Positions 18,461 through 19,261 of a stretch of 64,000 bases of DNA are shown one piece after another. The position numbers and the translations under genes were made by a program. Each line of letters begins with the position of its first letter. The stretch's first letter is position 1. Below the pieces are notes generated by a model. The model worked only from the letters and a program-made list of their open reading frames with translations. It did not search any database and was not told the DNA's origin. This DNA is from Utricularia gibba (taxonomy: Eukaryota; Plantae; Magnoliophyta): assembly GCA_002189035.1 (NCBI GenBank), contig NEEC01000028.1, positions 186,001-250,000 of the forward strand, in the 5' to 3' direction.

Positions 18461-18529
18461 TTACGACCACTGAACAAACTTGGTTGACGAACATAGTTTA
18501 TGCGCCGCTCATGTAGCGGCTTGTCGAGC
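18461..18529 (-). pseudogene. rpl16: 3' terminal 23 codons of mitochondrial rpl16
   Basis: GCT CGA CAA GCC GCT ACA TGA GCG GCG CAT AAA CTA TGT TCG TCA ACC AAG TTT GTT CAG TGG TCG TAA = ARQAAT*AAHKLCSSTKFVQWS*, the RPL16 C-terminus with one internal stop. Confidence 0.8.
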
Positions 18530-18549
18530 CTTTGTCATAAAGAGAGCTT

Positions 18550-19098
18550 TTATACTTTCTTTTGCTTATAGTATTCATCGTAATCCATGATCAGTTGATA
18601 CGATGCTTCGCTGGGACTTGTCCACGACTGTTTATTTAAAAGTTGAATTTGAGTGTGCAAAAATGCACGATCGCAAGGGTCTGAACTGGACAATCTCAGT
18701 TCAGTCATAGTTCGGTCTATTACTCGATTTTGTGGGGTTCTACCATTCCCCGACTGTAATAAAAAGAAGAGAATCTCATTTTCGATTTCTTCCTTGGAGT
18801 AGACTTTTGTGTCTGATCCGGATTCGGAAGCAATTTCAGGCTCAGGCGCGTTCGCCTTTTCAGGCTCAGGCTCGTTAAGCGGCGCGCATAGCGCCGGGGT
18901 AGAAACCCAAAAAGAGCAGCAAAAAAGAAGAATACAAAGGAGAATTTTCTTATTAGCCACTTTGTCACGACGCCAGGAAGCCCGCACCAAGATCCATGAT
19001 ACAAAAACAAAAACCAGAATCAAAAAGAAAAAGATATCGTGATGAAACTCAAAGATCCACCCGTGGATCACGCTTTTTCCGAATAGTCGAATCATCAT
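18550..19098 (-). CDS. Chimeric orf182: cox2 TM1 fused to a novel second hydrophobic segment and a soluble domain (CMS-like)
   Basis: ATG-initiated intact 182-aa frame; 18979-19044 encodes HHDIFFFLILVFVFVSWILVRA (COX2 TM1), followed by KKILLCILLFCCSFWVSTPALCA and an acidic tail. Confidence 0.7.
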   Translation of the reverse strand: MMIRLFGKSVIHGWIFEFHHDIFFFLILVFVFVSWILVRASWRRDKVANKKILLCILLFCCSFWVSTPALCAPLNEPEPEKANAPEPEIASESGSDTKVYSKEEIENEILFFLLQSGNGRTPQNRVIDRTMTELRLSSSDPCDRAFLHTQIQLLNKQSWTSPSEASYQLIMDYDEYYKQKKV

Positions 19099-19118
19099 TT
19101 TTTCATTGATTCATTTCA

Positions 19119-19140
19119 TTCTTTGACAGCTCTGCTCCAC
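19119..19140 (-). promoter_or_regulatory. cox2-type 5' leader box upstream of orf182
   Basis: GTGGAGCAGAGCTGTCAAAGAA about 20 nt before the ATG resembles the GGAGCAGAGCAGTCAAAGAATGAA block upstream of eudicot cox2. Confidence 0.55.
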
Positions 19141-19200
19141 CTCAGAAATGAGGAATGACTTGGGTTGGGCAATTAATTGGTACAACCTAGAGACGAAGAA

Positions 19201-19261
19201 CTGCGGTTGGTTGTTGACCAACAGAAAGCATGGGAGTAAGAAAGATGTACAAAAAGGGTGC
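19201..19261 (-). repeat. 61-bp duplicate of the atp8 5' leader (other copy 24011-24071)
   Basis: CTGCGGTTGGTTGTTGACCAACAGAAAGCATGGGAGTAAGAAAGATG(T/C)ACAAAAAGGGTGC, 60 of 61 nt identical, same orientation relative to each gene. Confidence 0.9.

Follow-up and report, generated by a model that had tools for sequence, protein, structure and literature searches.

A cox2-headed open reading frame in Utricularia gibba mitochondrial DNA belongs to a modular family of plant mitochondrial reading frames

The 64,000-nucleotide stretch of Utricularia gibba DNA analyzed here (contig NEEC01000028.1, positions 186,001 to 250,000; hereafter the window, with positions counted from its first letter) is plant mitochondrial DNA, carrying cob, atp6, atp8, cox3, an sdh4 open reading frame (ORF), 11 tRNA genes and group II intron domains. 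On its minus strand, at 18550-19098 with the stop included, lies orf182, which starts with ATG and is open for 182 codons without interruption in the ORF listing. A model's first reading of the letters (the original prediction) had described this frame as intact and as lying downstream of, and on the same strand as, atp6, atp8, cox3 and the sdh4 ORF, all of which holds. It had also proposed that orf182 is a chimera assembled in this genome and built like a cytoplasmic male-sterility (CMS) gene, with 5' and 3' signals borrowed from atp8 and rpl16. The CMS-type anatomy was borne out: orf182 starts with a piece of a respiratory gene, encodes membrane helices, has leader elements in common with other genes, and is homologous to the rice sterility candidate CW-orf307. 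The assembly in this genome was not, since the leader, N-terminus, both hydrophobic helices and C-terminal domain are common as a unit to relatives with 35-42% identity. These sequence comparisons place orf182 in an old, modular family of plant mitochondrial ORFs, the N-terminal module of which is common to the rice candidate. The exact orf182 protein was missing from a collection of 15 billion proteins that does contain the cox3 and sdh4 products of the same genome, and orf182 therefore appears to be unannotated. Identities of cox3 and sdh4, at 87-97% for every angiosperm listed, gave no information on the placement of the genome.

The encoded protein has the build of a membrane protein, with two hydrophobic helices that are seen both in the hydropathy profile and in the predicted structure. 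The first of these (residues 20-43; 18970-19041, minus strand) is derived from the first transmembrane helix (TM1) of cytochrome c oxidase subunit 2 (COX2), as had been predicted, and the match extends to the DNA, where positions 18972-19050 align with the cox2-derived parts of contigs L001 and L002 at 81-85% identity. The Pfam family COX2_TM matched residues 15-51 with a score of 22.7 bits (E = 1.2e-4), just missing the cut-off of 22.8, and residues 14-46 could be aligned with residues 31-64 of 7jro_b, a COX2 chain from a solved cytochrome c oxidase (E = 6.8e-5). The leader, the start region and TM1 are what orf182 has in common with COX2; about 25 N-terminal residues are missing, and there is neither the second helix of COX2 nor its copper-binding domain (PF00116), which was not found in the Pfam scan, where COX2_TM was the sole COX2 match. 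A second hydrophobic segment had likewise been predicted, and is found at residues ≈50-70 (18889-18951, minus strand): Kyte–Doolittle analysis places it at residues ≈52-70, with windows scoring above 1.7 over residues 47-74, and the structural model has a helix at residues 50-65.

The AlphaFold model, made with an 18-sequence alignment of the family, consists of the membrane helices at residues 20-43 and 50-65, a disordered linker and a C-terminal four-helix bundle. The linker (18802-18888, minus strand) is acidic and made up largely of Pro, Glu and Ser; its confidence is low, with a predicted local distance difference test score (pLDDT) below 50 at residues 66-76 and 81-94, and it includes the SGSG motif of the family in the form SESGSD. 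The C-terminal domain (residues 100-182; 18553-18801, minus strand), which is conserved among the relatives, is modeled with confidence throughout (pLDDT 94-98), with bundle helices at residues 102-116, 124-133, 141-154 and 162-181. The original prediction had called this part a novel acidic soluble domain. It is indeed acidic, with an isoelectric point of 4.7 for residues 76-182, but it is not novel, as a search with this part of the protein by itself found it conserved across the family (see below). No Pfam family covers the domain in the Pfam scan. A Foldseek search of the PDB with the orf182 model gave nothing informative (best E = 1.3), VIA-align gave Z-scores of at most 7.9, which is the generic level for helical bundles, and matches in the ESM Atlas had TM-scores of at most 0.37, with Atlas feature scores of 0.71-0.80. 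Among AFDB clusters, a match was found to Q5U6C7 (364 aa, residues 252-363, E = 2e-3). Within the linker, the 14-nt sequence GCCTGAGCCTGAAA is present on the minus strand as a direct repeat at 18858-18871 and 18834-18847, 24 nt apart. The repeat encodes EPEPEK...APEPE, a small in-frame duplication that is not present in the relatives.

The family was delineated by an exhaustive HMMER search in which only residues 70-182 of orf182, i.e., no cox2 sequence, served as the query. This search returned eight true relatives that end in the domain (E = 6e-10 to 3e-4). The relatives range in length from 140 to 304 aa, and the alignments show that they have the whole architecture in common, over its entire length: a short IRFFGKSV-type N-terminus, an HHDIFFFLIL helix, a second helix, a linker with TAEC, PGNE and SGSG motifs, and the C-terminal domain, in which the conserved motifs include ELKL, SPSEAASQL and DYSKYY. 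The relatives with the full architecture of orf182 (P0027, P0038, P0032/35/36, P0031/37, P0024 and P0028/29) are unnamed ORFs on plant mitochondrial contigs from metagenomes and Logan assemblies, and their identity to orf182 is 34-42%. The closest relative is P0027, with 38% identity over the full length of orf182 (E = 2e-33). A word-index search with the whole orf182 protein returned mainly cox2 proteins. Three of its matches, P0001, P0004 and P0006 (37% identity), were first set aside, their C-terminal part alone having E = 1.3, and were later counted as family when they scored E = 1e-15 in a search with the family profile. In all, ≈17 members were found among billions of proteins. The motif strings of the family had no match in the literature text.

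The members are built from modules. The N module comprises the cox2-derived leader, the short N-terminus, the helix resembling COX2 TM1, the second helix and the SGSG-type linker. It is joined directly to the bundle in orf182, P0027, P0031, P0032, P0038, P0024 and P0028, while in P0034 and P0039-42 a Ser/Pro-rich middle module lies between the two. CW-orf307 has the N module and the middle module followed by another C-terminal module, and is matched over its full length by P0045 (E = 1e-38). Long cox2 heads precede the bundle in P0036 and P0043. Two JGI metagenome proteins, P0041 and P0042, are identical over their first ≈152 residues and differ by 27% in the bundle, which looks like an exchange of the C-terminal module between copies.

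The link to rice was made in the family profile search, in which CW-orf307 was matched with E = 3e-12; by hhalign, residues 1-105 of orf182 correspond to residues 4-105 of CW-orf307 with a probability of 99.1%. According to Fujii et al. 2010 (PMC2851602), CW-orf307 has its first 294 bp, including a cox2-identical segment, from the N-terminal part of orf288. The same plan as in orf182, a short N-terminal peptide, a cox2-derived transmembrane segment, a hydrophobic stretch and an SGSG-type motif, is found in CW-orf307 and orf288 (the latter also known as orf314), in orf312 and in the orf288-derived part of WA352/orf352. The rice ORFs are longer, with 288-352 aa compared to 182 aa, and have the additional Ser/Pro-rich middle module, and CW-orf307 ends in the C-terminal module shared with P0045 instead of the four-helix bundle of orf182. 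The metagenome protein P0041 has 50% identity to CW-orf307 over 171 aa (E = 2e-37), and its C-terminal domain is a bundle of the orf182 type (hhalign 99.9%). Since P0041 thus joins an N-terminal part like that of CW-orf307 to the C-terminal domain of orf182, the rice link is strengthened. A search with P0041 residues 160-256, aimed at rice orf288 and WA352, returned P0041 and P0042 only.

Rice ORFs of the orf288 group are associated with CMS, or are cryptic CMS genes silenced by pentatricopeptide repeat (PPR) proteins (PMC8141088, PMC13170784, PMC12123059). In particular, orf288 is reported to be a cryptic sterility gene, the RNA of which is suppressed by the PPR protein rf4/PPR782 (PMC13170784), orf312 is the Tadukan-type CMS gene and similar to orf288, and the orf288-derived C-terminus of WA352 binds COX11 (PMC8141088, PMC13170784, PMC8418389, PMC12123059). 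The best structural match to orf182 in Swiss-Prot was Arabidopsis AtMg01280 (orf291; Foldseek E = 9.5e-3, 23% identity over 241 columns), in which residues 10-175 of orf182 are aligned with residues 31-270; the TM-scores of 0.18 and 0.12 make this a lead only. AtMg01280 is described as a non-functional ORF, with the restorer-like PPR protein RFL2 assisting in the cleavage of its RNA (PMC5138203). We also considered an identity with the rice D1/FA-type CMS gene that bears the name orf182 (PMC8141088, PMC11312923), found no evidence in support of it, and put the common name down to a chance agreement in length; the "gene involved" column is empty for this entry in the review table.

The contigs that carry the relatives resemble plant mitochondrial DNA, and the relatives frequently lie close to essential genes. 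P0027 is found 260 nt upstream of a full nad6 on the same strand. Downstream of P0037, the last third of nad6 begins at a distance of 8 nt. In P0031, which is close to P0037, a short nad6 piece comes next, with ccmC downstream of it. P0038 is located between nad4L and rpl16-nad3-rps12, with nearly the whole of rpl16 in frame directly after its stop. An intact essential gene directly downstream and on the same strand is thus present in three of the nine contexts (P0027, P0031 and P0038), a frequent feature of the family and not a defining one. ORFs upstream of nad6 have been reported in the Mimulus mitogenome, without their cox2 content being given (PMC3381676). Another cox2-headed ORF, P0002 (265 aa), is located directly upstream of nad3-rps12 in contig L002 (5001-6672), and its C-terminal part is unrelated to orf182. 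We take its position to be that of the pcf sterility gene of petunia.

On its 3' side, orf182 is followed by a remnant of rpl16. The original prediction had placed the rpl16 3' end 21 nt past the stop and read it as a borrowed signal. The rpl16 sequence is there, but it begins 13 nt past the stop: positions 18537-18439 of the minus strand match positions 1385-1483 of contig L008 with 89% identity over 99 bp, and contain the last 25 rpl16 codons (18537-18461) followed by 22 nt of 3' flank. The Pfam family Ribosomal_L16 was found in L008, whereas a Pfam scan of the 22-residue piece in the window gave nothing, and the identity of the piece was established by the DNA alignment to L008. The piece in the window has an in-frame TGA at the position of a Leu codon in L008, and no stable RNA structure was detected in the 3' flank (z = +2.0). 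Because the relative in L008 has nearly the whole of rpl16 in frame after the ORF stop, we read the piece as a probable remnant of an old linkage. Relative to L008, ≈350 bp are absent between the end of orf182 and the rpl16 codons for NARQAA. As judged from this comparison, the arrangement in the window is probably a deletion derivative of the L008 type, which explains the rpl16 piece more simply than a newly borrowed signal would. With 25 rpl16 codons remaining, there is no intact essential gene directly downstream of orf182.

The C-terminus itself is also altered. Apart from P0027, the relatives retain a C-terminal tail, KYGKSL(F/Y)L, that orf182 has lost through a change of frame within 18541-18570 (minus strand), as shown by comparing the frames with those of the relatives. 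Past the sequence ...YYKQK, the +1 frame reads KYKSSLY, like the family tail, while the frame of orf182 ends with KKV and the stop. Consequently, orf182 stops 8-10 residues early, and the tail is legible in the +1 frame only. P0027 also ends by a premature stop ahead of the tail. By these comparisons, the orf182 copy has lost both the family tail and the downstream gene.

The 5' side combines two leader elements, both of which had been recognized in the original prediction. The cox2-type leader (19099-19162, minus strand) reaches up to the ATG and has 79% identity over 19106-19162 to the leader of the cox2-headed contig L001; a 23-nt core (19115-19137) is 96% identical to the leader in L002. 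Further upstream is a copy of the atp8 upstream region, which measures 67 bp (19195-19261, minus strand) rather than the 61 bp claimed and has 97% identity to 24005-24071, i.e., to the segment 65-131 nt upstream of the atp8 ATG (23940). It is covered by contigs from two RNA-labeled sequencing runs, X1 and X2. A second, weaker block of the same kind matches 19248-19280 to 24200-24233 with 91% identity. Given the 97% identity to the local atp8 locus, the copy is probably the result of a local event. The claim that orf182 had thereby borrowed a 5' signal was not supported, since the sole promoter-like motif near atp8 (24134-24142) lies outside the copied segment. No match to the promoter consensus CRTAAGAGA with at most one mismatch was found on the minus strand within 19099-21600, i.e., within 2.5 kb upstream of orf182.

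A 43-nt leader is found with several of the relatives (L003 7485-7527, L007 27-69 and L011 5006-5048), with 98-100% identity from contig to contig, and might be a common promoter or 5' processing element. This leader is lacking in orf182, which has the atp8 piece instead. A 21-22-nt core of the leader is nevertheless present in the window, upstream of cob (13317-13338, minus strand), and not upstream of orf182.

Measures of constraint were obtained from pairs of relatives. P0031 and P0037 are the sole unsaturated pair, with a synonymous divergence (dS) of 0.13 and a nonsynonymous divergence (dN) of 0.064, giving dN/dS = 0.48; in the other pairs, 46-78% of synonymous positions differ, with apparent ratios of 0.24-0.54. 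In a comparison of contigs L011 and L007, identity is 98.4% for the nad6 piece and 97.7% for the leader, but only 71-82% for the ORF bodies, and there in patches only. From this comparison, the two ORF bodies would either be paralogues of long standing or diverge at a much higher rate than the sequence around them.

Expression and distribution were assessed by comparing 5,901 letters of the window with contigs from sequencing runs; the runs were picked because they contain this stretch, and depths can therefore not be ranked between them. In the RNA-labeled run X1, contigs cover 18841-19098, 19079-19245 and 19247-19441, with no difference from the DNA inside orf182, and the contigs of X2, a run of the same study, span 19103-19413. 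The X1 contig for cox3 has a G>A difference at 22510, corresponding to C245U on the coding strand and a change from Pro82 to Leu, which is typical of editing; X1 thus holds processed mitochondrial RNA. At 19331, upstream of orf182, a G>A difference (C>U on the minus strand) accounts for all of the depth in X1 and none in X2, and could be either a partial RNA edit or a strain difference. X13, a larger RNA run that has the same organism label and belongs to a different study, had no orf182 contig, and coverage of cox3 was also thin in that run. Several samples bearing this organism label have DNA runs in which 59-100% of the sampled orf182 words were present, and one such run had none. In X23, from a differently labeled organism, the 310 bp at 18547-18856 were found without differences, but its contigs diverge past 18923 and past 19111, with more than 250 unlike letters. 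Judging from these contigs, the copy in this organism may be differently arranged, with alternative junctions inside and just upstream of orf182.

How these observations combine can be described as a sequence of events. An ORF-rpl16 arrangement like that in L008 would have been the ancestor of orf182; ≈350 bp would then have been lost, including most of rpl16, the tail would have been cut off by the 1-nt frame change, and a piece of the atp8 upstream region would have been gained. We regard orf182 as one more member of a family of CMS-type ORFs; activity of this copy in male sterility is, in our estimate, unlikely. Our favored reading, probable though well short of certain, is that of a selfish ORF that is cryptic or inactive in this genome and transcribed weakly at most, rather than of a sterility gene in action.

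Several points weigh against this reading. The rice link is carried by the ≈50 N-terminal residues and by the P0041 bridge, while beyond TM1 orf182 and CW-orf307 directly resemble each other in the SGSG motif only (E = 3e-4, probability 39%). The original prediction of a transcribed locus is matched by RNA-labeled contigs over the 5' half of orf182 and upstream of it, but these contigs are strandless and leave the 3' half uncovered, and the intergenic stretch 20664-20835 is covered as well, so that carry-over of DNA is possible. The frame retains 15 of the 23 family-conserved positions in the C-terminal domain, the lowest number among full members, most of which keep 68-89%. Finally, two parts of the picture are inferred: the helices would enter the membrane as a hairpin like that of COX2, so that the matrix side has the basic loop (RASWRRDKVANKK) and the intermembrane space the bundle, and the bundle could bind a partner or assembly factor in the manner of the C-terminal region of WA352 with COX11.

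The loss of the tail by a change of frame, the deletion of most of the downstream rpl16, the low retention of conserved positions, the premature stop in the closest relative and the absence of orf182 from the protein collection would all be in keeping with a decaying, functionless relic, the frame of which is open merely because plant mitochondrial DNA changes slowly. We regard this as a possible but rather unlikely explanation, as 182 codons have stayed open while neighboring foreign fragments are broken, the core of the bundle is kept, and X23 has 310 bp without a change. The opposite view is that orf182 is an acting CMS factor, with expression in anthers and with a restorer from the nucleus counteracting it in fertile plants. 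Its intact frame, CMS-type build and kinship with CW-orf307 are consistent with such a role, as are the RNA-labeled contigs over its 5' half and its presence in DNA runs of several samples with the same organism label, and rice orf288 provides a precedent for an ORF that is fixed in fertile plants and yet is a silenced sterility gene (PMC13170784). Nevertheless, the missing tail, the lack of a downstream essential gene for co-transcription, the lack of a promoter-like motif within 2.5 kb upstream on the orf182 strand and, allowing for its thin cox3 coverage, the lack of an orf182 contig in X13 make an acting CMS factor decidedly improbable.

The conserved fold and architecture, the dN/dS below 1 and the repeated operon-like placement with respiratory and ribosomal genes might also suggest that the family is an ordinary but unrecognized mitochondrial gene, useful, for example, in complex IV biogenesis, with orf182 as its copy in this genome. 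Such a gene would hardly be expected to have only ≈17 members among billions of proteins, an architecture that is highly variable through module swaps, and ORF bodies with 71-82% identity next to nad6 pieces with 98% in the same pair of contigs; moreover, orf288 is missing in about half of the rice cultivars surveyed (PMC2851602). We give this explanation little credence. Less credible still, to the point of being nearly dismissed, is a recent chimera built in this genome from pieces of atp8, cox2 and rpl16 around a novel sequence. The atp8 copy, with its 97% identity to the local locus, probably did arise locally. However, the remaining parts, from the cox2 leader to the C-terminal domain, form one unit in relatives from other plants, and the adjacency of the ORF to rpl16 exists elsewhere, in L008.

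Beyond the cryptic or inactive ORF that we favor for this genome, a bolder proposal can be made for the family as a whole, which we put forward as doubtful: it might be an ancient, angiosperm-wide modular toolkit for male sterility, consisting of a COX2-mimicking anchor and a four-helix bundle, in which the bundle would be the COX11-binding region (cs1) of WA352/orf288 and a part of the RFL2-targeted orf291, and orf182 would be a cryptic member silenced by a restorer. For this genome alone, the significance of orf182 is modest, being that of an unannotated and probably inactive copy. More generally, sterility genes of plant mitochondria are usually described as unique in sequence and as products of new recombination (PMC3381676), whereas orf182 combines a cox2-headed anchor, also found in a rice sterility candidate, with a folded C-terminal domain common to ORFs of several plants, and these ORFs are repeatedly found ahead of essential genes. 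If the toolkit proposal were true, the sterility genes of distant plants would share ancestry rather than each being unique. Should the C-terminal domain turn out to be the part by which the rice proteins bind a partner, a single assay, of how the bundle binds COX11 or a different protein of the intermembrane space, could serve across species, and mitogenome annotation could flag such ORFs by homology instead of by ad hoc rules for chimeras.

The remainder of the region contains sequence of foreign origin in a broken state, as the original prediction had stated. Directly downstream of the rpl16 remnant are fragments of a nuclear P-type (E1-E2) Ca-ATPase in several broken frames (17045-18360, minus strand), a part of which (18117-18304) is also found in X23, with a 1-nt insertion. 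A 203-aa ORF at 14179-14790 (minus strand) includes a fragment of the RNA-dependent RNA polymerase of a mitovirus (Pfam E = 5.5e-22; profile positions 81-177 of 497). Just upstream of the atp8 leader copy, within 19268-19369, the short blocks 19272-19289 and 19322-19340 recur at 94-100% identity. They belong to a family of very short dispersed repeats, found at ≈40 other places in the window on both strands, for example at 8720-8737, 13457-13474, 23253-23270 and 48244-48257.

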